Positions 2,044-64,000 are shown, numbered from the stretch's first letter. The stretch is DNA of 64,000 bases from Mytilus trossulus (GCF_036588685.1 NW_026963298.1:434001-498000), one strand, 5' to 3'. Numbers and translations: made by a program. The notes: a model not told the origin generated them from the letters alone.

Positions 2044-2126
2044 TTTAATATCTGTTATTAAATCAAAATACAAAATATAAGACTATAGAAATCTTTTATT
2101 TTAAATTATAAAAAAAACTAAAAAAA

Positions 2127-8699: not shown

Positions 8700-8761
8700 G
8701 ACACATAGAAAACGTCATGTTGCTTATTGACGCCGGTATTGATCTCAATATACAGGATCAG
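8700..8761 (+). pseudogene. Disrupted ankyrin exon A (3' two-thirds remain)
   Basis: HIENVMLLIDAGIDLNIQDQ then GTCAGT donor; directly preceded by a repeat insertion (8288-8699); no intact acceptor. Confidence 0.75.
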
Positions 8762-11700
8762 GTCAGTGGTTTATAAGTCAAACTTACAATCATATTGGAT
8801 TACATGCAATAACAAAAATTGAATTAAGAAGTAGAAGAAAGCCTATCAAACTATAAACAAAAGTTGTTTTCTTAATGTCTGGTAAACAAAGTCAAGGACA
8901 ATAACAAAAGGATTTGACGTTAACGTCTCTGTAACATATACTGTGGATTCATTTATCTTAGTGGATACAAATTTGCGTGGATTGAAGAAAAATGACGTTT
9001 TCGTGTAAACATACTATCGTGGTTTTGCAAAAGTCTTCACACAAACCATATGTAAATTTCCAATTTTTTGAAACTTTAAATTCGTGGCTAGCCTGTATCC
9101 ACAAAATCAATGATAATTGGTATCCAAAGAATATGTATGAGTCCACAGTACCAAAATAAGAAAATACAAAATATGACAAAGCAATTCGCGGATTAACATC
9201 ACTTTTAAACTATCAAATAAAAAGATATATGACAGAAACATTTTTTCAACCGGATTTACTTAATGTAATAAAAAAAAAGGAGACAACACAAACTGAGTTC
9301 ATCCTTGTTGGTAATAGAGTTTAATAGACAGACTTATTCAAATGGAATATAATCACGATATTATTATCAGGTCATTCACAGTTGCATATTTTGAAATTGT
9401 AAATAGACACTAACAAACTAATAATGTTTACTTATTAAAGAGGGACGAAAGCTACCAAAGGAACAGTCAAACTCATAAATCTAAAACAAACTGACAACAC
9501 CATGGTTAAAAATGAAAAAGACAACCAAACAAACACAAGTACACATGACACAACATACAAAACTAAAGAATAAACAACACGAACCCCACAAAAAAACTAG
9601 GGGTAATATTTCCTATGACTCTAAATAACATTCGCTATTCAAATGACGATAAATTGTAAAACAAACTAATTAATAATCATGATAAAAACAACAAATAGTA
9701 AGTTTGGATTTTGACAATTTATTGTTATGGATTTATTAGGACAGTTCAACTATATATCAACTGGTCATTTGCATTAATCGACAATGTCTCAGTAATGTGA
9801 AAGATAAAACATTGAAGGCTACCATACGTAATCTGTAAATAATTCAGCTATTCAGTAAAACAATATATTCAGTACATATTCCGTCCTATCCATGACACTT
9901 TAACAATATATGCAAATATACAACAGAGAGTAGAAAATATTCTCAATGGTGGGATAAGGTGGGTCTTTGTGTTCTTTCAGTTTAAATCACGCAATGAACA
10001 AATCAAGAAAAACATGCAATTTTATACCAAATAAAAGCGGTAAAACCGCTTATGAATTATATAGGTAAATGGAAAACGCTAAGTCCTTCAAAATTAAAGA
10101 AAAGATAACTCTAGCTAAGCAGACGATATTCTCAATTTATCAAATTAATGTACATGTAATGCTTAATGATTAAATCTTAATAATATTAGATAAAACAGAA
10201 ATAAATTATTGTCATGAAAAGACAGCATAGACCGGGTTTCAGTGTTTTTTTGAAAGAGGTAGATCTGATTTTAGTTTCCCAATTATGAATTTTAAATTTA
10301 TATGTATCAACATTGCTGCAAAGTCCTTCGCACTACATTGCACAGCTAATACTCATCTTCTGATTTACCATGATATGGTTTTGGAAGAACGATACTAGAT
10401 GTTGTAAGATTCTGGTTCGGTATTGGTTTATGTCTTATCGTCTGTGATTTGTTTTATCTATTTTCTCTATGGTTGTAAACGTAAGGATGTTAATTCACAT
10501 AGCTGTTCTGTCGTCAATTAATTTTTTGAGTTTGTTGTTATACTGAAGCTTACACGTTCAATTGTACTGCCATATTATTAGTTTGTGTATACCTCTGACC
10601 TGCATGTTATTGCATTTATTTTTACAGTATTCCTTTTAGATAATTTTGTCATTTTAGCGATACTTGTTACAATAATAAAACTATAAAACAAGGTTCAACC
10701 AAGAATTTCCCCTTATAATGTATTGTACCAAGTTGGGAATACTGCACATAAAATTGAAAATGGAAAATGGGGAATGTGTCAAATAGACAACAACCCGACC
10801 AAATAAAAACACAACAGCAAAAGGTCACCAACAGGTCTTCAATGTAGCGAGAAATTCCCGCACCTGGAGGCGTACTTCAGAGGCCCCTAAACAAATATAT
10901 ACTAGTTCAGTGATAATGAACGCCATACTAATTTCCAAATTGTACACAAGAAACTAAAATTAAAATAATACAAGACTAACAAAGGCCAGAAGCTCCTGAC
11001 TTGGGACAGGCGCAAAAATGCGGCGAGGTTAAACATGTTTGTGAGATCTCAACTTATTCCAAGACCAGTATATGGCAGGATACGAGTTATGACCTTCTGA
11101 TATATTTAACGATGACTGGAAGATTTGTTTTTTATTCTAATATGATGAAGACATGTTTTGTTAATCTGTTGAGAGTTGTCTCATTGTCACTCATACCACA
11201 GCATCTAATGTTTTTTTAGAAATCAACCAACTGAAAATAATAGGTTATGTGTTTCGTGTACAAATAGTGTTCTCAAAGAACAACTTCTTTCAAATTGTTC
11301 AGTTTTCGAAAATAAGAGGGATGTCTTTCCCAACCTTCTTAAAGTTCATCAACAAATAAATGAGGGAGATTCAGCTCTGGAACAGCACCCATATTTATCT
11401 TTAGTAAGGCACTGTTAATCATGTTTATAGAACAGATCATTATTTATGGACTACATGTATATTGTACATTTTAGCCCTATGGTACCTATCCAAGCTTTTA
11501 TTGATCCAATTTACAGTTTGGGCTGTCTTAAACATACCCTTACAAGTTGTTGATGGACAATTTCTGCTAGGTTCCTATATCTATAAATATGTTCTTTATT
11601 CTTTATTTTTACGTTTCATTGTTAAGTTCAGCAGACTTTGTTATACCTCACGTACCGAATGTTTAAAGTGTTCTTGACATTGTATTTATCTTATCAGTAT

Positions 11701-14700
11701 TTACAATTATAACATATGGTGTAGCATTCTCCTGTTTTCATTTGCTATTACGATCACGTGTTTCAAAGTTTATTTTGTGTATCCGAAGCCTTGGTTATAT
11801 TTTTAGCTTTATTGCCGCAATGATTATATGTATGATTCTTTAGTGGTGATTAAAAAAATAAAGTAGTAAATTAAGATTTATGACGTCATGGTGTCGCACA
11901 AACCAACCACGGAGGAAGCGCCACACCAGACGAAGTTAATCAGAAGGAGATATCACGAATGTTTCGTCAAAATACAGACACTGTAAAAGCAAGGAATCTA
12001 ACGCAATAAGATGTGATCCAAAGCTATTCAAAGAATATCGATATTAAAAAAAACGTGTAAAAAATGCTGCAAAATACAATTTGAAAATAAACAGAAGGAT
12101 ATTTAATGTCATTTACCTAATATATATATTTTTTTGTATTATATAAGTTAATGACTTTCACTCAGTCAATACGTTATATATGGACCTGTTAAATTATATT
12201 GCCACTTGAACTTCTTTCTCGGTAAATATAATCTGAAAAGGTTCATATAACGTATTGACCTCGTCATCAGTCTACTATAAGTGATTAAACAAATTATTTT
12301 AAGTTCAAGCCTATATTCTTTTTAAAGTGAATTTGTGATGCTTCGAATCATATAAAAACAAACATGCAGATTGAAAAAGTATTGATATCAAATTGAAAAC
12401 TGATAATGTTTGTTATACACTTAGTGAAAACCTGAGTTGTTACAATATCATTTTAGTTGCCTAATTTATCATTCAATGTGATGCTTATATTTTTTTGTTC
12501 TATTCAGAAGGGAAGAACTGCATTTAACCTTGCTGCATCATACGGTACAACAGAAACTATAAAGACGCTGATCGATGCTGGAATTGATGTCAACTTACTT
12601 GAAAAGGTCAGTGCTTCATTAATCAATTATAACACTTATCAGTCATGTATCCATGTCTGTTATATCAATGTTCTTAAAATGATATAAACATTTTGCTAGA
12701 CATCACTTGAAGGTGTAACCCATCATAGAAATGGAATATTTACATTTGGGAACGCATGTCTTATGTCGTAAACTTTGGTTTTCAAAATGTTTCATGGTTT
12801 ATTCTTAAAAGTAAGTCATCATATGAGACAGACTTGAACATATATGAGTTATACATAAAAATATGTACAGCAAATGTTTGTTATACATCATGCCTGAACT
12901 ATTTTATTGACAAGATATTTTACCAGATAGTCCACCAACAGAGGTATCGAGTCAGTAATATCAGCATGCTCTGAATGGCATGCCTCACAAGTGTTCTTCT
13001 CTCTTTCATCTTTACTGAATGAACTACAATATAGTTCATATGTTTTACAAATACGAATACCACTACAAGCGGATTTTAGTTGCAATTGAAACACGTTGCT
13101 GTCTTAGTCTTTTTTTGAAGAGTTTATAAAAATCTCATTAGGGGAAGCAAAGTAAATAGACAATATAATTATCAGCCGAAAACAGTAACATCATAGTACA
13201 CTACCATAACACTTCTAATAAGATGTGTGACTTTGCGATACAGATATATAATTCCCATAGGGTGATTTGTATGTCTTCAATTAATAAATATGTACTGCGT
13301 TTATATCAAGGATGGCTCGAGTGCACTACACAATGCTGCAAGTAAAGGAAGTGCAGGAATTGTTGATTTGCTTATTAACAATGGAATTGAGATCAATCTT
13401 CAGAAAAAGGTAAGTTGTACAATAGAAATAAAACAGGCGAACTCCTGATCTAACACCACAATGTGACTATGTCAATGGCAAACATTAAAGAGTGCAGGTC
13501 AATGCAAACCAATCGTTTACTTTATTTACATATGTTCTGATAAATAGAAGCATTACAAATTGTTGTATAATTCATAGAAGCATAACTTGTTGTTGTCTGA
13601 AACATAGAAGTATTACAAATTGGTGAATAATACATGGAAGCATTACTAGTTGTTGTCTGATGCATAGAAACATTACAAATTGTTTTTCTGGTACATATCC
13701 ACAGCGGATTTTAGTTGCAATTGAAACACGTTGCTGTCTTAGTCTTTTTTTGAAGAGTTTATAAAAATCTCATTAGGGGAAGGAAAGTAAATAGACAATA
13801 TAATTATCAGCCGAAAACAGTAACATCATAGTACACTACCATAACACTTCTAATTAGATATGTGACTTTGCGATACAGCTATATAATTCCCTTAGGGTGA
13901 TTTGTGTGTCTTCAATTGATAAATATGTACTGCGTTTATATCAAGGATGGCTCGAGTGCACTACACAATGCTGCAAGTAAAGGAAGTGCAGGAATTGTTA
14001 ACTTGCTTATTAACAATGGGATTGAGATCAATCTTCAGAAGAAGGTAAGTTGTACAATAGAAATAAAACAGGCGAACTCCTGATCTAACACCACAATGTG
14101 ACTATGTCAATGGCAAACATTAAAGAGTGCAGGTCAATGCAAACCAATCGTTTACTTTATTTACATATGTTATGATAAATAGACGCATTACAAATTGTTG
14201 TTTAATTCATAGAAGCATAACTTGTTGTTGTCTGAAACATAGAAGTATTACAAATTGGTGCATAATACATGGAAGCATTACTAGTTGTTGTCTGATGCAT
14301 AGAAACATTACAAATTATTTTTCTGGTACATATAAGCATAAAAATTTGTCGTCGGATACATTAAATCATTAAAAATTGTTGTCTGATACATAGAAGCATT
14401 ACAAAGTGTTGTCTGTTACATAGAAGCATTACAAAGTGTTGTCTGATACATAAAATCATTAAAAATTGTTGTCTGATACATAGAAGCATTACAAAGTGTT
14501 GTCTGATACAAAGAAGCATTACAAAGTGTTGTCTGATACATAAAATCATTAAAAATTGTTGTTTGATACATAGAAGCATAACAAAGTGTTGTCTGATACA
14601 TAGAAGCATTACAAAGTGTTGTCTGATACATAGAAGCATTGCAAAGTGTTGTCTGATACATAGAATCATAACAAAGTGTTGTATGATACATAGAAGCATA

Positions 14701-17700
14701 ACAAAGTGTTGTCTGATACATAGAAGCATTGCAAAGTGTTATATGATACATAGAGGCATTACAAAGTGTTGCCTGATACATAGAAGCATAACAAAGTGTT
14801 GTCTGATACATAGAAGCATTACAAAGTGTTGTCTGATACATAGAAGCATAACAAAGTGTTGTCTGATACATAGAAGCATTACAAAGTGTTGTCTGATACA
14901 TAGAAGCATTACAAAGTGTTGTCTGATACATAGAAGCATAACAAAGTGTTGTCTGATACATAGAAGCATTACAAAGTGTTGTCTGATACAGAGAAGCATT
15001 TCAAAGTGTTGTCTGATACATAGAAGCATTACAAAGTGTTGTCTGATACATATAAGCATTACAAAGTGTTGTCTGATACATAGAAGCATTACAAAGTGTT
15101 GTCTGATACATAGAAGCATTACAAAGTGTTGTCTGATACATAGAGGAATAACAAATTGATGTTTGATACATAGAAGCACTACACATTGGTGGCTCATACA
15201 TAGAAGCATTACAAATTGTTTTCTGATATGTCATGGTTTCTCTTCTTTTTGTAATTTTGTACATTTCAATTTATTTCGAGATCCATGTCTTAATATCAGT
15301 GAATATGTGAGTTAGGCAAAGTAAGTTTACCTTATGCTTCTCTTGCGTTGGGCTACACAATTTGTCAAATATGTCGGCAATGAAGAAGAATTACAAAATA
15401 TATTAAATTGTAACTTAACGATCTACATTACCAAAAAAGTATTCAATAAGATATTTTAACATCCAATTCGATTTTACTACAAGGCTGTCGTACACAATTA
15501 TAAAGGACAAAGCACAGAAAGAAAATATAACGCAAGGGACAACAAAAAAGTAAATGGACAATATAAGTATCAGTCAAAAGCAGTAACATCATAGTACACT
15601 ACCCTAACACTTCTAATGAGATGTGTGACTTTGCAATACAGCTATATACTTCCCATAGGCTGATTTGTATGTCTTCAATTAATAAATATGTACTGCGTTT
15701 ATATCAAGGATGGCTCGAGTGCACTACACACTGCTGCAAGTACAGGAAGTGCAGGAATTGTACATTTGCTTATTAACAATGGAATTGAGATCAATGTTCA
15801 GACGAAGGTAAGTTGCATATTAGAAATAGAACAGGCAAATTACTAATCTAACACCAGAATGTGACTATTTCAATGGCAAACATTAAAGAGTGTAGGTCAA
15901 TGCAAACCAATCGTTTGCTTTATTTCCATATATCAATACACATTGTTGTCTGATACATAGAAGCGTTACAAATTGTTGTTTGATACTAAGAAGCATTACA
16001 AACTTTTATATGATATATAGAAGCATTACCAATTGTTTTCTGATTCATATAATCATTACAAACTGTAGTCTGATATATACCAACATTACAAATTGATGCC
16101 TGATAAATAGAAGCATCACAAGTTGATGTCTCATACATAGAGGCATTACAAACTGTTGTCTGATACATAGAAGCATTACACATTGTTTTCTTGTACATAT
16201 AAACATTACGAATTGTTGTCTGATACATAGAAGAAATACAAATTGTTTTATTATACATATAATCATTACAAACTGTTGTCTGATACATAGCAACATTACA
16301 AATTGATGCCTGATACATAGAAGCAATACAGACCGTTGTCTGATACATAGAAGTATCACAAATTATTATCTGATCCATAGAAGGAAAACTATTTTTTTTC
16401 TGGTACATAGAAGCATTAAAAATTGATGTATTATACATAGAAGCACTGCACATTGGTGGCTCATACATAGAAGCATTACAAATTGTTTTCTGATATGTCA
16501 TGGTTTCTCTTCATTTTTGTCATTTTGTACATTTCAATTTATTTCGAGACCCATGTCTTAATATCAGTTAATATGTGTGTTAATCAAAATGAGTTTTCCT
16601 TATGATTCTCTTGCGTTTGGCTACACAATTTTTCAAATATGTCGGTAATAAGAAGCAGTACAAAATATATTAAATTGTATCCTTACGATCTACATTAACA
16701 AAAAAGTATTCTATATAATATTTTAACATCCAATTCGATTTTACTACAAGGCTGTCGTACACAATTATAAAGGACAAAGCAAAGAAAGAAAATATAATGC
16801 TAGGGACAACAAAAAAGTAAATGGACAATATAAGTATCAGTCAAAAGCAGTAACATCATAATACACTACCCTAACACTTCTAATGAGATGTGTGACTTTG
16901 CAATACAGCTATATACTTCCCATAGGCTGATTTGTATGTCTTCAATTAATAAATATGTACTGCGTTTATATCAAGGATGGCTCGAGTGCACTACACACTG
17001 CTGCAAGTGAAGGAAGTGCAGAAATAGTTAATTTGCTTATTAACAATGGAATTGAGATCAATGTTCAGAAGAAGGTAAGTTGCACATTAGAAATAGAACA
17101 GACAAATTACTGATCTAACACAAGAATGTGACTATTTCAATGGCAAACATTAAAGAGTGTAGGTCAATGCAAACCAATCGTTTGCTTTTTTTCCATATAT
17201 CAATACAAATTGTTGTCTGCTACATAGAAGCGTTACTAATTGTTGTTTGATACTAAGAATCATTACAAACTCTTGTAATGCGGCGTAAAGCAACCAACAA
17301 TCAATCAATCAATCAAACTCTTGTATGATATATAGAAGCATTACCAATTGTTTTCTGATACAAAGAAGCATTACAAATTATTGTCTGATACATAGAAGAA
17401 ATACAAATTGTTTTCTGATACATAGAATCATTACAAACTGTTGTCTGATACATAACAAGATTACAGATTGATGTCTGATACATAGAAGCATCACAAGTTG
17501 ATGTCTCATACATAGAGGCATTACAAACTGTTTCCTGATGCATAGAAGCATTACAAATTGTCGTCTGATACTTAGAAGCATTACAAATTGGTGTCTGATA
17601 CATAGAAGCATTACAAACAGATGTCTGATACATAGAAGCGTTACAAATTGTTTTCTTGTACATATAAACATTACGAATTGTTGTCTGGTACATGGAAGCA

Positions 17701-20700
17701 TTACAAATTGATGTCTTGTACATAGAAGCATAACAAATTGATGTTTGATACATAGAAGCACTACAATTTGGTGACTGATACATAGCAGCATTACAAACTG
17801 TTTCATGGTACATAGAAGCATTACAAATTGTTTTCTGATACATAGAAGCACTACAAATTGTTTTTTTGTACATATAAGCATTATAAATTGTTGTCTGATA
17901 CATAGACACATTACATCTTATTATCTGATACCTAGAAGCACTAAACATTGGTGCCATATATACATAGAAGCATTACAAGTTTATTTCTGATACATAGAAT
18001 CATTACAAACTGTTATCCAATACATAGACACTTTACAAATTGTGGTCTGATACTTAGAAGCCTCACAAATTGTTGTCTGATACATAGAGGCATTTCAAAT
18101 TGCTGTCTGATACATAGAAGCATTAGAAATTGCTGTCTGATACATAGAAGCTTCACAAATTGTTTTCTGGTACATAGAAGCTTCACAAATTGATGTAAAA
18201 TACATAGAAGCATTACAAACTGTTATCTTATACATAGAAGCATCACAAATTGTTGTCAAATGTATAGAGGCATTACAAATTGTTGTCTGATACATAGAAG
18301 CATTACAAAGTGTTGTCTGATACATAGACGCATTACAAACAGATGTCTGATACATAGAAGCATTACAAAGTGTTGTCTGATACATAAAAGCATTACAAAC
18401 AGATGTTTGATACATAGAAGCATTACAAATAGATGTCTGATACATAGAAGCATTACAAAGTGTTGTTTGATACATAGAAGCATTACAAAGTGTTATCTGA
18501 TACATAGAAGCATTACTAACAGCTGTCTGATACATAGAAGCATTACAAAGTGTTGTCTGTTACATAGAAGCATTACTAACAGATGTATGATGCATAGAAG
18601 CATTACAAAGTGTTGTCTGATACATAGAAGCATTACAAAGTGTTGTCTGATACATAGAAGCATTACACATTGATGTCTGATATGTCATGTTTTCTCTTAT
18701 TTATGGTTATAACACATATGATAGCAGCATAGTACGTTTTGACATGTAAATTAAATGTTTATGTAACAAACTAACAAACTAAAATATTATGTATGTATAA
18801 TAGTTTTTTTATTGTCATTTTGTACATTTCAATTTATTTTGAGATTCATGTTTTTATATCAGTGAAAATGTGTGTTAGTCAATCTGAGTTTCTGAATTTT
18901 AATGCGCGTATTGTTATGCGTTTACTTTTCTACATTGGCTAAAGGTAAAGGGGGAGTGTTGAGATCTCACAAACATGTTTAACCTCGCCGCGTTTTTGCG
19001 CCTGTCCCAAGTCAGGAGTCTCTGGCCTTTGTTAGTCTTGTATTATTTTAATGTTAGTTTCTTGTGTCAATTTGAAAATTAGTATGGCGTTCATTATCAC
19101 TGAACTAGTAAATATTTGTTTAGGGGCCATCTGAAGGACGCCTCAGGGTGCTTGAATTTCTCTCTACATTGAAGACCTGTTGGTGACCTTCTGCTGTTGT
19201 TTTTTTTTCTATGGTTGGGTTGTTGTCACTTTTACACATTCCAATTTCCATTCTGAATTTTATTGCTTTATACTTTTCGTGCGTTTGGCAACGCAACTTG
19301 TCAAATATACCGGCAATGAAGAGGAAGTACAAAATATATCAAATTGTAACCTAACGATCTTCGTTATTATAATTAGTGTTCTATATAATATTTTAGCATC
19401 CAATTCGATTTTACAACAGGCTGTCACACACAGTTATATAAAACAGAGCAGAGAAAGACAATAAATAAAATGCAAGGGAAAACAAACTTTACAAAATTAT
19501 TTACTTTATAAACCACAATTTGGTGTATATGTCTTACAACAACGAAGTCAACACTATAAACTGTTTTGAGCCTAAATGGAAACACACGGCAGTGTTATTC
19601 AAATTACCATGAATAATCATTCTTCCGTACGATCTCATAAAATATATATTTAATGGACAATATACACGAAACAATCATCAGTAGAAAAACATTATATTGA
19701 ACACATTAGTACACTACCATAACACAGGATGTGTTACTTTGCTGATCATCTATATACATCCCAACGTCTGAATTTTTTTTATATGTGTTACACTGTTATA
19801 TCGTAACTCTGTTTCTTCCAAGGATGGTTCCACTGCACTACACAATGCTGCAAGTACAGGAAATACAGAAATTGTCCAATTGCTTATTGATAATGAAATC
19901 GAGATCAATTTTCAAAACAAGGTAAGTTATACATAAAAACACAAGTGAGAAACTAAATAAAATGATAATGTGGATATTGTACATGGCAAACAGTGCACAA
20001 AATGTAGACTGCACGGGAATATAAACTGAGCGTTTGCTTAATTCATGAACGTTATGAAAAATAGTAGCATGAACTATTGTATTCCTATATTGATGTCACT
20101 TTTTTCATTTGATTTGCCTTAAACTAACCACTAATTCGTTTCTTGTTGCTTACATTTAATAGCCAACATAGGATATTTGATGTTTTCAAAATATTTCAAG
20201 CAATTGAGAGAGGTTAACTGAGCCTTTTCGGTAATAACAGTATTTTAAGTCCGATGTAGCAAAATAAGTTGATTATTTTATTGAAAATACACATTTCAAG
20301 CCTTTGTCACTCAAAAATGTAGCACACATGTCGGCTATAGTAGAGGGAATACATGACCAAACAGTGTGTTAACTACAAAAAGCATGAAACAATATATTAT
20401 CCTATAATATTTCTACATTCACTATAATATGTCAAATCTGTTTAGGTCTGTCCCGAAAAAAACTATCTTCTAGGTTTTAAAACAAAGATAAAAGATAATA
20501 TAGCAATTGAGCGTTTCAATTAAAACAGAACAGAAAATGCACACACAAAACCGTTGAAAGGACAAAGTTTGTCAACATAACACACGATGTAAAATTAATA
20601 TCATAACAAACAAAAAATTAAAAAAAAAATCAACAAGAACATTACATGATCTGTAATGATAAAAAGGTACTGCGTCAAATGTGACTTCCTTTAGGATGTT

Positions 20701-35700: not shown

Positions 35701-38700
35701 TTTTTACCAAATACATCAACAAAACAAAACCGTAATCGTATTTAAAGGATCTGGTAAGTCTTACAAAAAATTAACTGAAATGATTAAAGGAATCAAGTGC
35801 AAAATTCAACAGACTCAAATATATCACATGCATGTTTGCGAGGTTTCTGCAAATATAGTGAAAATCATTTCAATGGAAATACTCACAAACGTAATCAACA
35901 TGTTGGTGATATAATGCATAAGAGAATATAATATTAATAACTTAATTTACCTCAAACTTGCTGTCACTCGCCTTGCATCTATGATGTAAATATTAATTGA
36001 CCTTCGATTTGGCGTCTTTCAAACAACCTTGCGGAAATGTTACAATTACTCTAAAAGAAGTACGAGTCCGGATACGATCTTATATTCCGGGAAGTTCCCG
36101 TTTTTACATGTTTCGGTTCCAATTATAATTTATAATGTTTACATTGATAATGATAATGTACAGAAGAGAAGCAAAATACTTTTCTTTAAATACAAAATAT
36201 GTATTGGCACAAAGTCATTAATTACAACAATGAATGGTCCATTGAACCATTTAAAGTCAGTAATGTACAGCATTATTGCATATAATGATATTTAAAAAGA
36301 CATATATTTATTATGAAAAGTTTATAGGAAACTTAGAAAAATATGAGTGGAAATAATAATCATATGGGATGTTTTAAATCTGAAATAGGATAAGAAAAAA
36401 ATGACATGAAATAATATCATACCAGTGAAAAGGCCGTGATATTTTTTATTAAGCATGGAAGGACAAATTATCACAGCCTTTTCACGGGATATCGAAATTT
36501 CACGGTCTTTTTCTGACATCAAATACTTTTCATGGCCTTTAGAAATATGTTTTTTACAAAAGTTACGGGGTTTTACGGACCTGTGATGTTTCACAGACAT
36601 GTTACGGCCTTGTTATGGGCTGTTGATACAGAAGTGTGTTCGGTGCAAATGAGAGATCATTTATTTCTAATCGGCGCGAATGTCTAATGTTTGACTAAAA
36701 CATATTCTTATGATTCAGGAGCAGACGCCGATGGATCAACCAACCAATGATAAAATAAGACAGGTATTTAAGGTAATAAATGGATTGTTTTTCTTTTGTT
36801 AAGATTCTTATGCTTAGCCATATTAGTGTGCATTTTACACTTAAAATCCTATCTACATATCTGCTTGATAATACGTGTGACTGATTAAAAATTTGAAGAA
36901 AAAAAACAACATTTATTTGTTGAGAATGTAAACATTTGATTATGCTTTTCTTGACATATTCATAACCGACATATATAATTATTTCATGTTGTATTGCAGG
37001 ATTATAAATCGCGTTTGCCTGGTGAGTATTCTATTTTTTTATACGACTGCATCATTATTTGCTAAGTCATATCGAATTAATAAATATCCATTTTTTTCAA
37101 ATATTTGTCTCTAGAGTTAAATAGTATCTATTTGCTATACCAATGAGTGTTACTAGTTTTGAAGTTCGTAACTAAAGGCAACAGTATAATGATGAAATAC
37201 TTCCTGAAAATATACCAACACTTCTAAGCCAATATGTAGATCGTTTTATATATCATGTGACCTTAGAGTTATTATTCGAAATTCTAGGTCTTCCAATTGA
37301 AATTCAAAAATTAGACAAACAATCTGCGCAAATGTTCACCAGAATGTTGGGAGAAGAAAGTTATCCACACTTTGAGTCAAGAGTAATGTTAGCTGGAGAA
37401 CAGGGCACAGGAAAGACAACTATAGCGAGGTATCTTGTTGGTAAACGGCCAACGCGACTCAGGATGTCAACAGATGGGATAGAATTATACAATGGTCTTT
37501 CATATATGGACATTGAAAGGAAGGAATGGCTTGGTGGAGATCAAGGTAATGCTTTAAAACAAAATGAAATGATTTGAGCAGAAATGAGATTTATATTTAA
37601 CGTACATGTCATCTTCTAATATGAAACACGTTCCATCAAGATGATCACGAACTATTGCCATTGGAAAGTGCTGAAAAGATACAAAAAATGCAATATGTAA
37701 GGTGTCTTGTTCAGAGAAGATCATTACTCTTACTTTTCAAACATATGTTCCTTTCCCTATGTTCATATATTGTTCGGCGATGTATTATCCTTATCAAACA
37801 AAAACACAGACATGACTTGGCAGAGTATAAATACATCCCTTTTCAATAAAAACGTGAAAGACACTAAGTACAAATATCAGAGTACTCGTAGTTGCTGACA
37901 GCTAGTTCAAAGCCAATAACACCTAATAGAAAACAATGTCACTAGGACTAAACTTTACATAAGTTTCTTTAGTATATTTAGAGGATTATTCATCTTTTTA
38001 ACGAAAATGTGTCATCAGGACAACGATAAGTGTTATACAATTGGAAGTTCTTTTAATGAGTTTGGCCATACAATGTGATTCATAACAGTATAGGGGCAAG
38101 TTTGTCGATAAGCTTTAATGCATAAAGTACATAAATAATGTCAAGGAGATAATATATTTCGATGTCGTGTTGGAAATATGAATTTGAAGCTATGTTTACT
38201 GCTAGCTTCTTTTTCATTGTCTTTGGGGAGTTCATGTTTCCTGTCTGCCTCATTAGAATAAATGAGAATGTCCGAATACATAGGGATACAATCTATTTCT
38301 ATGAAAATGCCGAATGTCTTTTAAAAAGACTCTTACTCAAGATGATACAAATATGTTAATGCAACATTCAAGATCGTGTTTATTTCACTTTTAATAAACG
38401 TTTTGTTTTAATCAGAGGGACTTTGATCAAAACTAATGGTGACGTGCATATTCCTCAAAGAATGTGTTTGTTATTTTGCTTTGAAATAATGCTCTCAGTC
38501 TTTAAGTTTATTATGAGACATGCGAGTTTAAAATAAGAAAAGTCAAATGTTGTATGATGTTGAACAAAGATGGGGACTACGGTAGGAAGGTATTTGACAT
38601 ACCTTTTTTAAATAAAACGGTATTAGCAGATGATTCGCATTGAAAGTTGATAGTGATAAAGACACTTTTTAGTTACGATGTCGGCGCACCTTGTTTCATT

Positions 38701-41700
38701 CATTTAAGCATCCATCCAATTCTCTCAGTTTTTATGTGTTACCTTCATTTCACTTCTTATAATATTTGAAACATTTTAACATCGGTGCAACTGTTGTAAT
38801 AATTTGTTCGGCTTTTTTCAACTTTATAATTTACTGTTACTTCCGTTATGTAACTCTGATCGTTCACTTAAAACAATCATTTTTTTCTTGTTTAAATGCT
38901 TATGCATTCGACCTTTATTTATTTTAATTTTTTGTCACATGTATTAATTTTTATGAATTATTTCTTTTTTGTCTTATTTTTTTATTGTTTTTTTTTTATT
39001 TTTTATTTTGTTTTTTGAATGGTTCCTTTGTATTATAAATCATGTTTATCATTGTATATATGAACCTCATGTTACACATACATGGGTCTGATCGTTACTT
39101 TACAATAAAATCTTGAAAATCTTGAAATCTTGAATCTTGTATAAGTTTCCAAATTTCACATGTGTTTACCAACACCACAGTCCTGTATAATACAGTTTAT
39201 GCCAAGCAATGTTCAAATACAAGTGTTAGAGACTTTGTATCCAGTGACGACACCACATAAGTGTAATGATTTGCATCAACAATTTTACAGTCATCCTCGA
39301 GAGTATATTCGTCTTCCCGTTCGCATTTATTACATGGCCATGCCTATTCTGCAAATATGGAGAAGGCCTCCGGGTGCGGGAATTTCTCGCTACATTGAAG
39401 ACCTATTGGTGACCTTCTGCGGTTGTTTTTTTATTTGGTCGGGTTGTTGTCTCTTTGACACATTCCCCATTTCCATTCTCAATTTTACACATTTCACAAG
39501 TAAGTATAGTCTCATAACATTAGTTATGTGAGTTATACGATATCAACATAGTTTGTAATTGCATTTTTTTATGTAACCTTATATGTTAATATTTGCCGTA
39601 AAACCATAAATTGTAGTAAAATTGAGTGCATACGTATACAATTCATATTTCAATAATCTCTCAATTAGATTTTTCCCTGGAAGAAATCACGGTTAGCAGA
39701 TCACTTTTACGAGAAGACAAACGAAAACAGAATATTAAGTTACCAGATACCTCGTCAGCCAGCCAAGATTTATCAGATGTAATGGAGGAAACGTCGATAT
39801 GTGACATGGAGGGAGATATCAACTATAAATCAAAAAGATCAGAACCGTCAATGGTATCGTCTTTATCTCAAAGCTCCGTGAACAAATATGAAATTGTCAA
39901 AACCCTGTCAGATGATCACTTTCAAACCTTACCGGATTATGCTGGAAGTTCGGTAATACATAGGAACAATAAATCACCAGGTCATGTATCAGGACAGACA
40001 TTAGAAATACAAGACAAATATGATGCTAGTATTACGGTGATACATACGAACAAGAAATCACCAGGTCATGTATCAGGACAGATATCAGAAATACCAGACA
40101 CAGATGATGCTAGTAGTACGGTGATACATATGGACAAGATATCACCAGGTCATGTATCAGAACAGATATCAGAAATACAAGACACAAACGATGCTAGTAG
40201 TACGGTGATACATATGAACACGAAATCACCAGGTCATGTATCAGGACAGACATCGGAAATACAAGACAAAGATGATGCTAGTAGTACGGTGATACATATG
40301 GACAAGAAATCACCAGGTCATGTATCAGGACAGACACCAGAAATACAAGACAAAGATTATGCTAGTAGTACGGTAATACATATGGACAAGAAATCACCAG
40401 GCCCTGTATCAGGACAGACATCAGAAATACAGGACAAAGATGATGCATTGGAGACAGCTGTTATAGCCAAACGCTCTAGTTCAAAAAGGCAATCAGATAT
40501 ATCAGTGTTTGGTGGAAACAGTGTAGTTGACTCTGTCAATATGAATAAACGAGTCGCACAAATGTATACAACTAGAAAAGCAAATATTGATGCTGCAAAT
40601 GATACACAAATATGTGAGGCTTCGATTGATAAATTCACCACACGGAATGATTACCATGATGTTTCTATAAAGTCAAGTTTCACTGGTGATTTGCATATAG
40701 AAACTGTTACTGAACGTGGAGTTATCAGAAAGCTAAAACGATTCTTTGGCATTACCAAACAAGTCAAAGAAGTTAAAGTGTCGATTACTAAGGAAAAATT
40801 CTTAGAAAAGTCTTCCAAAGTTGGGAAAAAGGAGTTGCACAACAAAAATATAGCGCCTATAATAATCTGGGATTTTGGAGGACAGGATGTTTTCTATTCA
40901 ACTCATCAGACATTTCTGACATACAGAGCTATTTACATAATTGTATTGGACGGAAGTAGACAACTTGATGATCCCTGTCCGTATGAACAATACCTCCCAG
41001 GAAAGAGTGGACATAAAACTTCAAGAGGTATGTAAAAACATACATATGTTTGAAATACACTCTGTTGTGAAACAGAAGTAACTACAAGTAAACAACGTTT
41101 TCATGTATGTTAAAATAAATACGCCTGATAACTTAAACACCCTCAAAAGAGAGTTTATTATTGCAAGAATTATTACTCAATTAATTTCTTTTTTTTAGAC
41201 AGTAGATTTCGTAGAGAACATATACATTTAACTGACTTTAGTACCTTTCTTCTTATGTATTGAACTTTTTTATTTTGTTTATACACGTTATAATTACAGA
41301 TTATCTGCTATTTTGGGTCAACACCATTGTAACATACTGCAAAGGAAGTATTCGGGGATTTCCTAAAATTCTGGTTGTTTTAACTCACAAAGATCAGGTA
41401 TCAGCTGTAAGTAGGTTGTATACCATGTTCTACATTTGAACTAATGGACTGTTTTGATTTTGAATAATATGCAGTGAAAAAATGTCTTATAATTGAATTA
41501 ATGGTGAATTATAATCGTCATTGTGCGAATGTGATATTTAATTGGTTTAGCGTCTTAAACGCAGTTTATATAAACAGGCGCTTCAGTTTAAAATGAATCT
41601 CCTAGTTGATCTTTGAATCTGTATGCATGTCTAACATTTTCTATATCTACATGGCATGAACACTACGACATAATCAATTAAAAAGGTCCATATCTATGTT

Positions 41701-44700
41701 GTATTTTTTATATATTTTTATTATATGTTTCGTGTCATAAGAAACACACAATAGCCTTACAGATACCCTTGTAATTCAAAAACCCAATACATGTGTTTCG
41801 TGTATATAAGGCAGGTGTCTCGAGAACAGATACAAACATACCAGGTCTTTACTTTGGAAAGACTTTTATACAAGATACACACCAAAATTACGTATGTATT
41901 TTCATAACATTTTCAGAGTGGGGTTGAACAAAGACGACATGACATATTTGGAGAAATCTTCAAGATGTTTCACAAAACGCCATTCATGCAACAATTAGTT
42001 ATTGATGATGAAATATTTGTAAACGCTAAAGACAAACATGACCCAGAAATGGCAAAGATAAAGGCCGCTATCATCAGGGAATCAGAGAGGCAACCAACAT
42101 GGGGCGAATCCCTCCCAAAATGCTTTATCCCTTTAGAGTTAGAATTTGCATCACTTATCAGACGAAATATTTCTCTGATTACACTAGATCATCTACAGAA
42201 AATAAACTCAATGCAGCCAATCAGATCGTTGTCAGAAACTGAGTTGAAGGTTTTTTCTGAAATTTCAACATTCAATTGGCAAGTTATTATTCTTTGATGA
42301 ACGTAAATTGGCAGACCGTATCATTTTGGCTCCCACCCTCCTCATTGATGCATTTAAATCAATTGTTACAGACAGGCGCTTTTGTGAGGGAAACAAGAAA
42401 CGAGAAGACATGTGGGATGCAATGGGCAAGAAAGGGGTGGTATCAAAACAAGCAATAGAGAGCGTTTGGAAGGCAAAGAAATATGTAACATTTTACAAAG
42501 ACAAAGATTATTTATTAAATGTCATGACCCATCTGGATATATTGGTCGAACCAAAGAGATATGGTTCTGATCACAAACGTATCACTGCTGATTTCTACTA
42601 CGTTGCAAGTATGGTTAGAGCTATAGATGATTCTGGATATCTCCAATCTTATGACATCACCAAACGAAATATTGCAATAGCCTTTCTTTCGTCTACAATG
42701 ATGATACCCCCAGCATTATCATTTAGATTTATCAGTTATTGTCTGTATGTCTGGGCGGTGAAGACATACGGAGAGACCAATAGGGACATGCTGTTCCATA
42801 GGTCAGGGGTTTTCACTGTGGATCCTTCAGTAGATATGTATGTTCTTTGTGAAGATCAGAGGATTGTTGTCCGTCTCGTCCATGCTGACACAAACACACT
42901 TATAATGAGGGATATGGCGTCCAGTATTAACGAATGTTTGGTATCGGCCTTGGAGAAAATCAGTCAGTTGTATATCAAAACAAGTAGCGATGAGAGTCAA
43001 CACATTGATGCATCCTTTACCACAAGCATATGTTGTAACTCACCAGATAATCCATGTATCCTACCATTAACAAGACTTGCGAACATTGACAGCATCTGGA
43101 CTTGTCCGTTTCATGGCATCGAACACAACATACATACAATCACATCGTGGTTTGCAAGAAAGGTATTTACAAATTATTTAAAAAGTGTTTCTGGTTAAAT
43201 TTAGAAATTTGATTTGACAAAATTGATTTTAAACGAAAATTCAGATTGGGACACAACTCTTAAATATTGCATCAGATGACTATGTGTATTGTGTCAGCCC
43301 TGCGCTCTCAAATTATTATTCTTTATACAGTGACAAATAAATATCTTATAACGGCGTGATGGATTAAAAGAAAGATATAAATATTCGTCCGATGTGTTTA
43401 TAAAGGATCTCTTGCCGATAACTCAATTAATTAACTATATTTCATTGTCCCGTTTATGTGAAAGGGAAAAAAACGCACAAGTTTTCATCGATTTTTTGTT
43501 TACTTTATACTTTTGTGAATTCAAAATATGAACATAACAGTATATAAAAATATTAACAACCTGTGTTTATAATTATTACACTAGATAAAAGCAAGGAACA
43601 TGAGCAAAACAAGCGTCTTTGTGCAATATGTTCATCGTGCTTCTATTGTGGTTGTTTCAAATCTGATTCTAAATTAGAAAAGAAAAAAAAGTATGTTACA
43701 TTATTTGTTCCAAATCAAAATGAGAGACATATATATAAATAAAAACGAACAAGTATTTGCAAAAAAGCCAGTTGAGGAACACACAAATGTAATAAGTGTA
43801 AGTAAAAATTCTGATAGCATTTCAAGTTTTAAATCGTTATGTGAGTTACTTGATGTGATGTAAAACACTTATTATCCTCGTGTTTCTTTTCTTGAAGGAT
43901 GAAGAAGAATGTGAACCAGGGTGTCCAGGTAATGTATGCTTAGTAGATAACAAAGAATATTGTAGTCTTTATTTGCGTCCTACCTTTGTTGTACGCATAC
44001 TAATATAAAACGAAGTATTTCTATCTAATATAACGTAGAATTGGGAGATTTTACTGAAATTTAAAAAAATATGAAAATGAAAATCCAGAACTCTCTAATC
44101 ATTATAAGTTTAATGCTGGTTATAAAATACCCCGCTATTATATCATACCAACGCAAAGTGCAATGAATATATTATGAAAGAAAGTTGACCCATAAAATAC
44201 AGTGCAAATATTGTATGATGTCATTTATTTATAATACAGTTTATTTGTATTGCACTGGCTCAGTTTTTACCAAAAATTCAAACATTAAAAAAACAATCTC
44301 AAAATACACACCGTTATGTATAAATGACTTTCTTTGCTAATAATGTTTTGTTTAAAGCATACACAATTTTTCCAATCCAGTTACAAATGACGACTTTTTG
44401 AAAGTGACGCCGTCAGATCTACACCTACGTCGTTTGTCCTTATTGTTCAGTAAAAATGAAGCCAGGGAAATAGCAATTAATCTAGGATTGTCCACCAAAG
44501 ACTTGGGTAACATTTTGGAAACTGATGATCCAAGAAAATGGAATTTTGAAGTTTTGAGGCGATGCAGAGACAGTATTGCAGTGACTTTTAATCACATTGA
44601 AGAAGCAGTGGAGTCAAGTGGCCAAGATGATGTCCACATACTTTGCAAGGTAAACACAAGGTGATGAACCACTAAACAAAGCTATATCTTTTTGCACAGT

Positions 44701-46874
44701 CCATTTTGCTTGATTGTTTACTGAATTCTTCCTTTGTTCCACAATTGTCCTATTTAATAACCAAACATATATACTGGTATTATATTATACTATACTATTT
44801 ATATGTTTTGGAGTTTAGTAAGACGTTCATTTGCAGGTGCACTGAACTATTACACATTTTTGTTTAAGGGCCAACTGAGGCACGCAGCCGAGTGCACAAC
44901 TATATCGCTGTGTTGAAGACCCATTGTAGCCTTGGCTATATGCTGTTCTATGCACTTCTGTCCGATTGTTTTATCTTTGACATATTCACTATTGGCATTC
45001 CTAATTTTAAAAGATATAGCTAAATATAATATCAACTAAATATCAACATGAATGATTCGTATGATATGATGACGGGCCATGTTATCTAATAGTAACTATG
45101 TTTTCCTTGTATTACAGCTTGTTAAAGCAGATTCTATTGATTTTGGTAAGTTATATGTTTGAATATTTTTCTAAGACTGTTTACTATCATTTGTCTGAAT
45201 GTCTTTTTCATTTTTTTTTTCATGTCAGTTATTTTCTAATCAATGAGTTTGACTGTTCCTCTGGTATTTTTCGCCTCTCTTTTTTAGCATGATGAAGTAT
45301 ATCATTATTGTAATCTATGGGTTTTCTCTGCGTTAAGTGTCCCTATCAGGCCTCAAGCTGAGTCACTAAATTAAAGCAACTTAAAGCTCGACTGAAAGAA
45401 CTGGTCAGTCTGTGTTTTTTAACAAAAAGGGCACAAGACGTTTTATATATTAAGTTTTGGGCTGGGATTCAGCGTACTTTGTGAAAATTCATACAGAGTC
45501 AAGGAAAAAATATACCGACGAGGATATCACTGCCATGCTGGACTTTTTAATTGACAACATACCTGTTGAATTTGGAGTTTTGGTCTTCAAACAGAATATT
45601 TGAATCCCAATGGATACCAATTGCGCTCCTCTACTCGCAGATTTTTTTTTAATTTTCATATGAAGCAGAATGTATCCAAGGGATTGTACAGAAAGTAGAA
45701 AAGAAATAAGCCCAGTCTTTTAATTTCACCTTTCGGTATATTGAGGATGTACTGTCTCTTAATAATAATAGATTCAGTGATCACTTACATTTGATATTTC
45801 CAAGTGAACTTGAAATTAAAGATACTACCGACACAGATAAATCTGCTTCATATTTAGACCTTTTTCTTGAAATGACTAATAGTAGGTTGAATACAAAAAT
45901 GTATAACAAACGCGATGATTTTAATTTCCCTATAACTTTCCATTTCTGTGTAGCAACATCCCAGCTGCACCAGCATATGGAGTACATGTGTCTAAATTGA
46001 TACGTTACTCTAGAGCTAGCTCAAAGTACGTTGACTTTGTTGAACGAGGAATACTGCTTTCTCAAAAGTTGTTAAGACAGGGCTATGAATCAATCAAATT
46101 AAGGTCATCATTCAGGAAATTTTACGGTCGCCATCATGAGCTGATTGGCCATTGTGACAAAAGTTTTTCAGAAATCATATCTGATATTGTTCGTCAGTCA
46201 TATAAACCTTCCATCATTAACGGACTGAACAAAGAAATAACACGACGGGTGTCGTATACGGTGCAGGCAATGTTTACCCTTCCGGAGCACCTGATTTCAC
46301 TCCCGGTTTTTAGTGGAGTTCGTGTTGTTTCTTAATCAATGTTTATAGCTGTTGATGTAAATGTCCTTTGGTTTTGTGAGTCTTTGTCAACTCCTTGGTT
46401 TAGATTGTTATTGTCTTCAAGTTTATCCTAAAAGTTGAACTTAAACATGTGTTATATGTACACTTTTGTACTGGTTTTCATTTGTTTTGCAAATCGTTGA
46501 AAAAATATGCACAATTTAATTTTGACTTCTAATCAAATACTACTTTATCTTTAAACATGACAGAGAAGGAAGCAGATAAATGGGACATGGTAGCCACAGA
46601 GGAGCACATTGACAGATTGGCTCCATTGGTTGGAAATAACTCACTTCCGTTCCTGATAGAACTTGGAATGGAGTTTCAGACCTGGGAGCAGATTACCCAC
46701 AGGCAAAACGAACGAGACTTGGTAAGACTGAACAAGGATATCTTAGAAGAATGGAGATTCCAGTTTTGCAAGATGCACAGTTTGAAACCAACTTTGAGGA
46801 ATGTCGCAAATGCATTCATTAACATTGGTAAAAATGTACAAATCGTTGAGAAAACGTTATCAGATTTGTTTTGA
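8700..46874 (+). CDS. Multi-exon ankyrin-repeat / Roc-COR / tandem death-like domain ROCO gene (DAPK-like architecture without kinase in window; 5' end upstream of window)
   Basis: Phase-compatible AG/GT exons: 11 ankyrin exons 12508-34147, then 36719-36772, 37000-37021, 37288-37545, 39669-41027, 41300-41406, 41917-43162, 43898-43928, 44381-44649, 45118-45145, 46564-46874 (TGA). Confidence 0.88.
8941..9148. mobile_element. Tc1/mariner-type MITE
   Basis: TIRs ctgtggattcat / atgagtccacag flanked by TA on both sides; empty site in the paralogous intron at ~40-55. Confidence 0.8.
10750..11055 (-). mobile_element. Penelope-like element 3' tail fragment (family B)
   Basis: Reverse complement of 23772-24057; other copies at 18892-19262 (+), 31790-31995 (-), 39366-39486 (+), ~44805-45010 (+). 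Confidence 0.8.
12165..12259. repeat. Inverted repeat / small MITE-like hairpin
   Basis: gtcaatacgttatatatggacct ... aggttcatataacgtattgac. Confidence 0.6.
12508..12606 (+). CDS. Ankyrin exon B
   Basis: ttcag|99 nt|gtcagt; KGRTAFNLAASYGTTETIKTLIDAGIDVNLLEK. Confidence 0.9.
13311..13409 (+). CDS. Ankyrin exon C
   Basis: tcaag|99 nt|gtaagt; DGSSALHNAASKGSAGIVDLLINNGIEINLQKK. Confidence 0.9.
13946..14044 (+). CDS. Ankyrin exon D
   Basis: tcaag|99 nt|gtaagt; DGSSALHNAASKGSAGIVNLLINNGIEINLQKK. Confidence 0.9.
14175..15228. repeat. 30-bp minisatellite (gatacatagaagcattacaaagtgttgtct)n
   Basis: Very homogeneous core at 14380-15140; short array also at 13535-13697. Confidence 0.97.
15709..15807 (+). 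CDS. Ankyrin exon E
   Basis: tcaag|99 nt|gtaagt; DGSSALHTAASTGSAGIVHLLINNGIEINVQTK. Confidence 0.9.
16976..17074 (+). CDS. Ankyrin exon F
   Basis: tcaag|99 nt|gtaagt; DGSSALHTAASEGSAEIVNLLINNGIEINVQKK. Confidence 0.9.
17278..17313 (+). mobile_element. 36-bp SINE/LINE 3' tail with 12-bp TSD
   Basis: caaactcttgta [atgcggcgtaaagcaaccaa(caat)4] caaactcttgta; absent from the paralog at ~15997. Confidence 0.75.
19823..19921 (+). CDS. Ankyrin exon G
   Basis: ccaag|99 nt|gtaagt; DGSTALHNAASTGNTEIVQLLIDNEIEINFQNK. Confidence 0.9.
21790..21888 (+). CDS. Ankyrin exon H
   Basis: ttcag|99 nt|gtgagc; DGSTILFDAILKGKTDIVHWLIDKGIDINVQDK. Confidence 0.9.
22083..24057 (+). mobile_element. 5'-truncated Penelope-like retroelement (RT ORF 22165-22992) with nested family A insertion at 23323-23771
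   Basis: QIIGIPMGTNCAPLIADLFL, FRYLDD, FLDL, YDKRDDF, YGVYISQL; empty site at ~31510 in the paralogous intron. Confidence 0.85.
24330..25172. repeat. ~29-bp minisatellite (gtaacgaataaggaataagtaacaattat)n
   Basis: Direct tandem repeats downstream of exon H. Confidence 0.95.
25765..25863 (+). CDS. Ankyrin exon I (paralog of C-F)
   Basis: tcaag|99 nt|gtaact; DGSSALQIAASKGSAEIVSLLIDNGIEINFQKK. Confidence 0.9.
25934..26289 (+). mobile_element. tRNA-derived SINE, full length
   Basis: A box tggtgtagtgg, B box ggttcgattcc; TSD taaatggc (25926-25933 / 26290-26297); central part resembles a Deu/Nin-type SINE domain (from memory); absent from C-F paralog introns. Confidence 0.85.
26620..27810. repeat. 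Diverged 30-bp minisatellite array
   Basis: Same unit as 14175-15228, after exon I. Confidence 0.93.
28580..28678 (+). CDS. Ankyrin exon J (paralog of G)
   Basis: tcaag|99 nt|gtaagt; DGSTALHSAASTGNTEIVQLLIDNEIEINFQNK. Confidence 0.9.
29514..30819. repeat. 435-bp tandem triplication
   Basis: Units start at 29514, 29949, 30384 and are nearly identical; single copy at ~20958-21390. Confidence 0.95.
31221..31319 (+). CDS. Ankyrin exon K (paralog of H)
   Basis: ttcag|99 nt|gtaagc; DGSTILFDAIVKGNTDIVHWVIDKGIDINVQDE. Confidence 0.9.
32000..32795. repeat. ~29-bp minisatellite, second array
   Basis: Same unit as 24330-25172, downstream of exon K. Confidence 0.95.
34046..34147 (+). CDS. Ankyrin exon L (last full repeat)
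   Basis: ttaag|102 nt|gtaagt; DGNTALHLAVVINNDVLATLLLNRGCNSNIQNKY. Confidence 0.88.
34270..34862 (-). mobile_element. Degenerate Penelope-like RT C-terminal fragment and tail
   Basis: Reverse strand reads like YD.RDDF.FPIV.FPFLSSNIPAAPAYGVYISQLIRY. Confidence 0.7.
36719..37021 (+). CDS. Ankyrin C-cap exon (36719-36772) and 22-nt linker exon (37000-37021)
   Basis: EQTPMDQPTNDKIRQVFK (TPxD cap motif; alternative in-frame donor after 36763) and DYKSRLP(G) with gtgagt donor; phases fit the next exon. Confidence 0.7.
37288..37545 (+). CDS. Roc domain exon 1 (P-loop G1, G2)
   Basis: RVMLAGEQGTGKTT ... MSTDGI; ctag acceptor, gtaatg donor. Confidence 0.92.
39669..41027 (+). CDS. Roc domain exon 2: ~390-aa insert with 28-aa repeats, then G3
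   Basis: Open frame ending IIIWDFGGQDVFYSTHQTFLTYRAIYIIVLD, a typical Roc G3 region. Confidence 0.92.
39934..40448 (+). repeat. Coding 84-bp tandem repeat (~6 x 28 aa)
   Basis: KSPGHVSGQTSEIQDKDDASSTVIHMDK units with 84-nt period (39971, 40055, ... 40391). Confidence 0.95.
41300..41406 (+). CDS. Roc domain exon 3 (G4)
   Basis: DYLLFWVNTI...PKILVVLTHKDQVSA; tacag acceptor, gtaagt donor. Confidence 0.88.
41917..43162 (+). CDS. End of Roc + COR domain exon (one +1 frameshift)
   Basis: IFVNAK, QPTWGESLPKCFIPLE; LKFQHSIGKLLFFD..LADRIILAP restored by deleting one T at 42251-42256. Confidence 0.88.
43898..45145 (+). CDS. Linker exon 43898-43928, death-like domain 1 exon 44381-44649, linker exon 45118-45145
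   Basis: DEEECEPGCP; PSDLHLRRLS...EIAINLGLS...FEVLRRC helical death-fold pattern; LVKADSIDF; compatible phases. Confidence 0.72.
45345..46417 (+). mobile_element. Degenerate Penelope-like RT element in the last ROCO intron
   Basis: IPMDTNCAPLLAD, FRYIEDVL, SASYLDL, YNKRDDFNF, LIRYSRAS, with stops and frameshifts. Confidence 0.82.
46564..46874 (+). CDS. Terminal exon, death-like domain 2
   Basis: HIDRLAPLVG...LIELGME...ILEEW...PTLRNVANAFINIG, then TGA; death-domain-like spacing. Confidence 0.78.
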
Positions 46875-63995: not shown

Positions 63996-64000
63996 TAAAA

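Follow-up and report, generated by a model that had tools for sequence, protein, structure and literature searches.

The ROCO proteins known from animals amount to a handful of conserved genes, LRRK1/2, DAPK1 and MFHAS1, of which the vertebrate DAPK1 combines, in this order, a kinase, a calmodulin (CaM) site, ankyrin repeats, the Roc and COR domains and a death domain (DD). In brown algae, genes of the leucine-rich repeat (LRR)-Roc-COR type contain one repeat per exon, undergo exon duplication or shuffling and have been proposed as candidate immune receptors; the repertoire of Ectocarpus comprises 35-37 genes, and alternative splicing as well as diversifying selection have been reported for the brown-algal ROCOs (PMC11378527). 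Roc-COR is also found in some TLR- and MyD88-like proteins of the Aplysia immunome (PMC9334734), and in sessile marine invertebrates, death-fold proteins of variable architecture have undergone large expansions specific to single lineages (PMC8195603). Here, we describe a gene of the mussel Mytilus trossulus that lies, except for its 5' end, in a stretch of 64,000 nucleotides (GCF_036588685.1 NW_026963298.1:434001-498000). This whole stretch, hereafter the window, is AT-rich (GC about 32%) and contains zero N; positions are counted from its first letter, with negative numbers for the sequence 5' of it. A first-pass annotation had seen in it an exon-modular ankyrin-Roc-COR-death-death gene and proposed a candidate diversifying innate-immune receptor.

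The locus is a real transcribed Mytilus gene; its product is a kinase-less ROCO GTPase that combines an ankyrin array with two DDs. The order of the encoded modules is an ankyrin cap, about 12 one-repeat ankyrin exons of phase 0, a short linker, an interrupted Roc, COR and the DD pair (Table 1). Pfam and structure searches as well as folds were run exon by exon, and the proposed layout was borne out by the exon catalogue, by the Pfam profiles for Ank, Roc and COR-A and by the predicted DD folds. The order of ankyrin repeats, Roc, COR and C-terminal DD is shared with DAPK1, from which the mussel gene differs by the lack of a kinase or CaM segment, by its two DDs, by a 400-residue insert in Roc and by its hundreds of paralogs. 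With the brown-algal ROCO genes it has in common an expanded family, one repeat per symmetrical exon and recent exon duplication; ankyrin instead of LRR exons, the animal host, the DD tail and the larger family (at least 150 COR exons) set it apart, and alternative splicing and diversifying selection have so far been reported for the algal genes. The parallel with NLRs drawn previously holds for the logic of sensor, switch and death fold and for the lineage-specific expansion, but not for the identity of the NTPase: instead of a NACHT/NB-ARC STAND ATPase, the putative switch of the mussel gene is a Ras-like Roc GTPase with COR, and, judged by its domain logic, the gene is an analogue and not a homologue of the NLR/STAND receptors.

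The gene starts about 4.8 kb 5' of the window, with an ATG at about -4786 which the first-pass annotation had missed. The ATG is followed by a 54-nt GT..AG intron and by the ankyrin cap exon (DFLYVARYGNPKKLQNCLKRGSNISNVNYQNL), which is similar to the N-terminal sequence of P0003 and P0223, two full-length homologs, and then by one 99-nt ankyrin exon at 628-726 nt 5' of the window start. The long intron that separates this exon from the first one inside the window contains a long interspersed nuclear element (LINE) at 751-7013. The earlier account had named an upstream kinase exon as the mark of a conventional DAPK1 ortholog; in 30 kb of upstream sequence, no kinase-like open reading frame (ORF) was detected, nor any coding ORF besides those of the start, the cap and the ankyrin exon just named. 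Three small exons had also been absent from that account, namely the two linker exons and the 31-nt mini exon listed in Table 1. The whole ORF 37176-37574 was considered as Roc exon and rejected, since the RefSeq model of a paralog (PB, see below) and conserved splice sites place the acceptor at 37287 and add the two linkers. Likewise, direct splicing of the COR exon to the first DD exon was discarded, as the phases are incompatible and the conserved mini exon restores the frame.

In the M. trossulus genome, the COR exon yielded at least 126 scored paralog matches among 550 candidates, and the Pfam COR-A profile at least 150 scored matches, all above the cut-off, among 343 candidates. About 40 of the COR matches showed 56-95% identity, most of them with intact frames of 400-470 residues. 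At E<=1e-50, 115 annotated Mytilus proteins were related to the gene. These family proteins are public but unnamed ('uncharacterized' or 'COR domain-containing'); P0194 (XP_063417516.1), P0003 (XP_071150151.1), P0179 and P0223 belong to the same family and have the same architecture. The number of detectable ankyrin repeats in annotated relatives ranges from 1 to 12 (about 12 in P0223), and what the window gene has of its own with respect to them are five ankyrin exons of the DGSS type and six 28-residue repeats in the Roc loop. In family members at a greater distance, the same Roc-COR-Death core is preceded by other modules (nSTAND3; EH-Macro-SH2-EF hand) at the N-terminus, and relatives were found in scallops and in a freshwater mussel. 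The locus is therefore one member of a very large, bivalve-wide and Mytilus-expanded family of kinase-less ROCO genes, and a lineage-specific family of this size fits a receptor-like reading. In the literature, we located nothing on a bivalve ROCO or ROCO-death expansion or on the modularity of its ankyrin exons.

The claim that every ankyrin repeat is a separate symmetrical exon was confirmed by scanning for AG..GT-bordered segments that are open and translate into ankyrin-like sequence: ten exons of 99 nt and one of 102 nt were recovered, all of them stop-free, bordered by AG and GT and in phase 0. All ankyrin exons tested singly against Pfam PF00023 (8/8) exceeded the gathering score and aligned to profile positions 1 to 30-33, which means that the exon borders follow the repeat register. 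Because all ankyrin exons are symmetrical, each gain or loss of an exon preserves the reading frame. For comparison between paralogs, we used PA (contig C23:137001-187000, loci L034-L038), PB (also on contig C23) and PC. The 102-nt terminal exon is single-copy and conserved in all four genes compared (the window gene, PA, PB and PC). A putative decayed thirteenth repeat at 35477-35527 was dropped (tblastn E=0.8, internal stop).

Self-comparison of the gene revealed exon-bearing intragenic duplicates with identities from 85 to 97.5%. The five DGSS-type exons have each other as nearest relatives (90-96%) and show at most 86% identity to the exons in those parts of PA, PB and PC that were compared; therefore, they arose within the window gene. 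For the other two exon types, counterparts with 93-96% identity exist in PA and PB; these types were duplicated independently in the window gene and in PB, whose copies are 100% identical, and both PA and PC possess private ankyrin exon duplicates. Thus, the recent and repeated birth of exons that had been postulated is visible in young duplicates, in gene-specific exons and in independent duplications. Exon death was traced as well: the segment 8707-8818, containing the ankyrin exon described as disrupted, is 88% identical to -682..-571, that is, to the 3' half and the intron of the intact upstream exon, and in place of the 5' half of the exon stands repeat DNA (8288-8699) which recurs at 23367-23771. 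The half exon is thus a dead duplicate of the upstream exon and represents one loss. Remodelling of the array without frameshift, as proposed, is consequently observed for gain and loss of exons; as to skipping of ankyrin exons, no case was found in RefSeq clusters, a weak test in which loci and species were mixed and the few isoforms differed by 0-4 residues.

Except for the one at 13311, all DGSS-type exons (four of five) have a 30-bp minisatellite downstream, which belongs to the duplicated unit. In the two-exon unit, a 29-bp array recurs about 1-2.5 kb downstream of its second exon. Since minisatellites form part of the duplicated units, unequal crossing-over would be the simplest mechanism for the growth of the array, which proceeds by tandem duplication of one- or two-exon units together with their minisatellite-rich introns, with occasional loss by truncation. 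In addition, an intronic 435-bp unit is repeated 3.0 times at 99% identity at 29514-30819, a very recent tandem amplification.

The three Roc motifs reported previously, GEQGTGKT (G1), WDFGGQ (G3) and THKD (G4), are all present. The exon with G3 reached 36.8 bits with Pfam PF08477 Roc (cut-off 27), and the best solved matches of the G3 segment were a Roco-type LRR protein (4wnr), the Roc of LRRK2 and C. tepidum Roco entries; matches of nSTAND3 and AAA on the P-loop exon were weak and limited to the P-loop. An RNA contig joins 37545 to 39669 by GT..AG (raw joint 37543>39667, cut +2), so that the insert encoded by the 1359-nt exon is present in the mRNA. Alignment of WDFGGQ to beta3 of LRRK2 would place this low-complexity insert in the beta2-beta3 loop of Roc. 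Its length varies between genes: the stretch before WDFGGQ measures 540 residues in PA, 263 in PB and 262 in PC, with 9, 1 and 1 copies of the 28-residue repeat, respectively, and in a homolog of M. galloprovincialis a different repeat, of 12 residues, occupies the position of the insert. One RNA contig (run X23) joins 37545 straight to 41300 and skips the 1359-nt insert/G3 exon in frame. Switch II would be lost through this splice; with a divergence of 3.5%, the contig may originate from a paralog. In PA, about 470 nt interrupt the segment matching 37176-37574, which covers intron and the G1 exon of Roc, and the RefSeq model of PA, P0183, begins only at the insert exon; this copy may be devoid of a P-loop.

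Regarding COR, its predicted position directly C-terminal of Roc was corroborated by homologs that pass the COR-A profile and by an intact paralog which is 95% identical over the COR exon. Three of the four close homologs tested (57-89% identity) contain COR-A, with 36.2 bits in P0001, 46.1 in P0002 (XP_063412073.1, Mytilus trossulus) and 43.3 in P0003. In the window itself, the larger of the two COR ORFs gave 28.8 bits, below the cut-off of 35.3, because the COR frame is split: a T6 run at 42251-42256 puts the exon in two frames (+1 T), and four paralogs have T5 instead. Logan contigs of four runs were compared with 37170-43169. In X1 (DNA, same species), contigs without one T covered the run with depths of 92.1 and 63.4, which add up to the full 155.5; in X20 (probably RNA, same species) and X2, depths of 5.04/5.04 and 13.1/13.1 were likewise without the extra T. 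X1 carries the locus itself, as intron contigs with 0-3 mismatches were obtained. As every covering contig of X1, X2 and X20 lacks one T, the extra T most likely stems from a homopolymer error in the assembly or represents a rare allele, and the gene is almost certainly intact in the species.

With respect to expression, contigs of two probable RNA runs from the same species were confined to exons, except for the repeat-rich intron stretch 39170-39569, where contigs of all four runs pile up. The RNA contigs showed the joints 37543>39667 and 41406>41917, ended at the COR donor and in some cases had 0-1 mismatches. Therefore, the window copy is transcribed and correctly spliced.

The presence of two death-like domains, which had been claimed as well, was examined with AlphaFold. 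Each of the two C-terminal exons was modelled from an alignment with paralogs, and the resulting models, both confident, were compared by Foldseek. Both exons are predicted to fold as DDs, with a six-helix bundle superposable on solved DDs. Nearly all top matches were DDs, with RAIDD first, followed by RIPK1, FADD, DR3, TNFR1, TRADD and ankyrin DDs, and CARDs ranked far lower; the Foldseek E-values were weak (0.006-0.03), as expected at about 90 residues. Pfam PF00531 Death had zero matches at E<=1 on both exons; the sequence link came only from iterated hidden Markov models, which, started from either of them, reached the Pfam-positive Death domains of the distant family members P0016, P0034 and P0063. 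The acceptor of the second DD exon is at 46566 or at 46569.

The established behaviour of ROCO proteins and DDs leads us to propose that the ankyrin solenoid may bind a partner or ligand, that Roc-COR would serve as a nucleotide-dependent dimeric switch, and that the tandem DDs could nucleate homotypic DD assemblies feeding into cell-death or NF-kB-type pathways. Family membership, architecture, this switch and effector role, growth of the exon array and an intact, transcribed copy together form what is probably the best explanation of the locus. Several observations weigh against it. The putative receptor or cell-death role is argued from domain logic; the window's own COR-A score stays below the Pfam cut-off; the LINE in the first long intron is on the sense strand; the window locus has no RefSeq protein among the 115 Mytilus matches; and the RefSeq clusters, with the limits mentioned, contain no ankyrin-skipping isoforms. 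Moreover, no signal of positive selection was detected in the three youngest exon pairs, with differences at 20/297 exon sites versus 51/1195 in the 200-nt flanks (not significant) and a nonsynonymous to synonymous ratio of 11:9, a comparison of few sites and low power. The residues that vary within the DGSS group (positions 7, 8, 12, 16, 19, 23, 30 and 32) lie mostly off the canonical binding positions of designed ankyrin proteins. The missing excess of nonsynonymous changes would also be expected if the protein were a functional scaffold of the ROCO-DD type, serving in housekeeping or in stress and cell death without relation to pathogen recognition, in which the number of ankyrin repeats varies by tolerance and is unselected. 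Conservation of the terminal repeat and the cap while internal repeats vary points in the same direction, as do the response of brown-algal ROCOs to several stresses (PMC11378527) and expansions common to many bivalve families. Hundreds of paralogs with swapped sensor-like N-terminal modules (ANK, nSTAND3, EH-Macro-SH2-EF) and DD tails typical of expanded invertebrate immune repertoires (PMC8195603) speak against such a scaffold, which we consider possible but somewhat unlikely. The reading as an immune receptor diversified by splicing is plausible but hypothetical. Its widest form, an NLR-like intracellular surveillance of the mussel in which hundreds of Roc-COR-DD genes would have their sensor ends and Roc loop diversified in the germline by unequal crossing-over, perhaps with presence-absence variation or cassette splicing and repertoires specific to each individual, is put forward very tentatively and must be called doubtful. 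In terms of size, this mussel genome with at least 150 COR exons compares with 35-37 genes in a brown alga, the largest repertoire given in PMC11378527, and one subfamily couples an exon-modular ankyrin array and tandem DDs to a GTPase switch. If these proteins were sensors, they would constitute an independent animal counterpart of the NLRs with a different NTPase and a tractable case of receptor diversification via exon duplication.

Two further alternatives deny the locus either its function or its family. According to one of them, the copy is a decaying pseudogene, and minisatellite-rich introns gave rise to the exon duplications as a neutral side effect, which would account for the T6 frameshift in the COR exon of the assembly, the truncated half exon, the LINE on the same strand in the first intron and an exon divergence of young duplicates that is not below that of the introns. 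It would also agree with the closest paralog PA, whose G1 region is interrupted and whose model is truncated N-terminally, and with the missing RefSeq protein; the placeable C23 models belong to the paralogs PA (P0183) and PB (P0179), and an annotation of the window locus as pseudogene due to the extra T would explain its absence. We regard decay as improbable: all read contigs over the run have T5, including those of the DNA run that holds the introns of the locus at 99-100% identity, the remaining exons are all open with canonical splice sites, and spliced RNA contigs match the exons with 0-1 mismatches. Hardly credible is a conventional DAPK1 ortholog with its kinase exons further upstream, even if the order ANK-Roc-COR-DD equals that of DAPK1 minus the kinase, since the gene has its own ATG and cap at about -4786 with no kinase-like ORF in the 30 kb upstream and the homologs P0003 and P0223 begin with the same cap; in addition, DAPK1 is single-copy with one DD, versus two DDs and at least 126-150 paralogous COR exons here.

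Table 1. Coordinates of exons, repeats and duplicated segments in the window (DD, death domain; pLDDT, predicted local distance difference test; TM, template modelling score; rmsd, root-mean-square deviation; scan, exon scan described in the text).
Feature	Position	Strand	Evidence or remark
LINE retrotransposon (gag-like CCHC ORF; APE-RT ORF in three frames)	751..7013	+	zf-CCHC, RVT_1 6.8e-34, Exo_endo_phos
Truncated ankyrin half exon (ENVMLLIDAGIDLNIQDQ then gt donor), acceptor missing	8707..8764	+	identity to upstream exon
Ankyrin exon, 99 nt, phase 0-0, KGRTAF type	12508..12606	+	Pfam Ank 22.8 bits, cut-off 21.1
Ankyrin exon, 99 nt, DGSS type; in tandem-duplicated 635-bp unit, 97.5% identity	13311..13409	+	scan, Pfam Ank
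Ankyrin exon, 99 nt, DGSS type, twin of 13311	13946..14044	+	scan, self-comparison
Ankyrin exon, 99 nt, DGSS type	15709..15807	+	scan, Pfam Ank, paralog comparison
Ankyrin exon, 99 nt, DGSS type	16976..17074	+	scan, paralog comparison
Ankyrin exon, 99 nt, DGSTALH..TGNTEIV type, first of two-exon unit copied about 9 kb downstream	19823..19921	+	Pfam Ank
Ankyrin exon, 99 nt, DGSTILFDA type, second of two-exon unit	21790..21888	+	scan, self-comparison, Pfam Ank
Ankyrin exon, 99 nt, DGSS type	25765..25863	+	scan, self-comparison, Pfam Ank
Ankyrin exon, 99 nt, duplicate of 19823 (94%)	28580..28678	+	scan, self-comparison
Ankyrin exon, 99 nt, duplicate of 21790 (91%; flanks 90-96%)	31221..31319	+	Pfam Ank, self-comparison
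Terminal ankyrin exon, 102 nt	34046..34147	+	scan, Pfam Ank, paralog comparison
Linker exon (EQTPMDQPTNDKIRQVFK), phase 0-0	36719..36772	+	agrees with RefSeq model P0179 of paralog PB
Linker exon (DYKSRLP+G), phase 0-1	37000..37021	+	RefSeq model of PB, conserved splice sites
Roc exon with G1 P-loop GEQGTGKT and switch I Thr	37288..37545	+	donor confirmed by RNA contig
1359-nt exon, phase 1-1: Ser/Asp/Lys-rich insert (400 residues), then Roc beta3/G3 WDFGGQ and switch II	39669..41027	+	Pfam Roc 5.3e-9
Coding 84-bp tandem repeat, 6.1 copies (28-residue units), in Roc insert	39935..40446	+	repeat analysis
Roc exon with G4 THKD	41300..41406	+	RNA joints 37543>41298 and 41406>41917
Exon with last part of Roc and COR	41917..43162	+	Pfam, paralogs, read contigs; frame broken in assembly
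31-nt mini exon (DEEECEPGCP+G)	43898..43928	+	conserved in PA, PB, PC
DD 1 exon	44381..44649	+	pLDDT 85.8; RAIDD DD TM 0.84, rmsd 1.7 A
DD 2 exon, coding to 46871, stop 46872-46874	46566..46874	+	pLDDT 94.3; RAIDD DD TM 0.78/0.87
Duplicate pair	13068-13698 / 13703-14333		97.5%; tandem unit with exons 13311 and 13946
Duplicate pair	14665-16495 / 15932-17780		85.7%
Duplicate pair	12729-13479 / 25180-25933		85.3%
Duplicate pair	19263-20621 / 28018-29408		85%; part of two-exon unit, copy about 9 kb downstream
Duplicate pair	20961-22083 / 30385-31514		93%; remainder of two-exon unit
Intronic 30-bp minisatellite, 35 copies	14173..15228	.	tandem-repeat analysis
Related minisatellite arrays	15937-16495, 17314-18682, 26623-27811		each downstream of a DGSS-type exon

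Apart from the exons, the introns of the gene contain long ORFs on the plus strand at 22156-22989 and 45710-46332, which are related to each other and are probably remnants of retroelements; the two intronic ORFs tested with Pfam (22156-22989 and 45925-46332) gave no match. At the far end of the window, a long array of tandem repeats of about 60 nt, strongly A-rich and on the plus strand, extends from 59600 to 64000 with an open frame of KSSLPLYKTLKTDMHEPQQG-like 20-residue units and has no meaningful Pfam match. Between the ROCO gene and this array lies a downstream gene, also on the plus strand, with a Sushi exon at 50638-50850 (Pfam 3.7e-11) and a C-type lectin exon at 54790-55086 (1e-7). 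In M. galloprovincialis, gene model P0185 is a fusion of a C-type lectin and a ROCO gene; a conserved neighbourhood of the two is therefore suggested.

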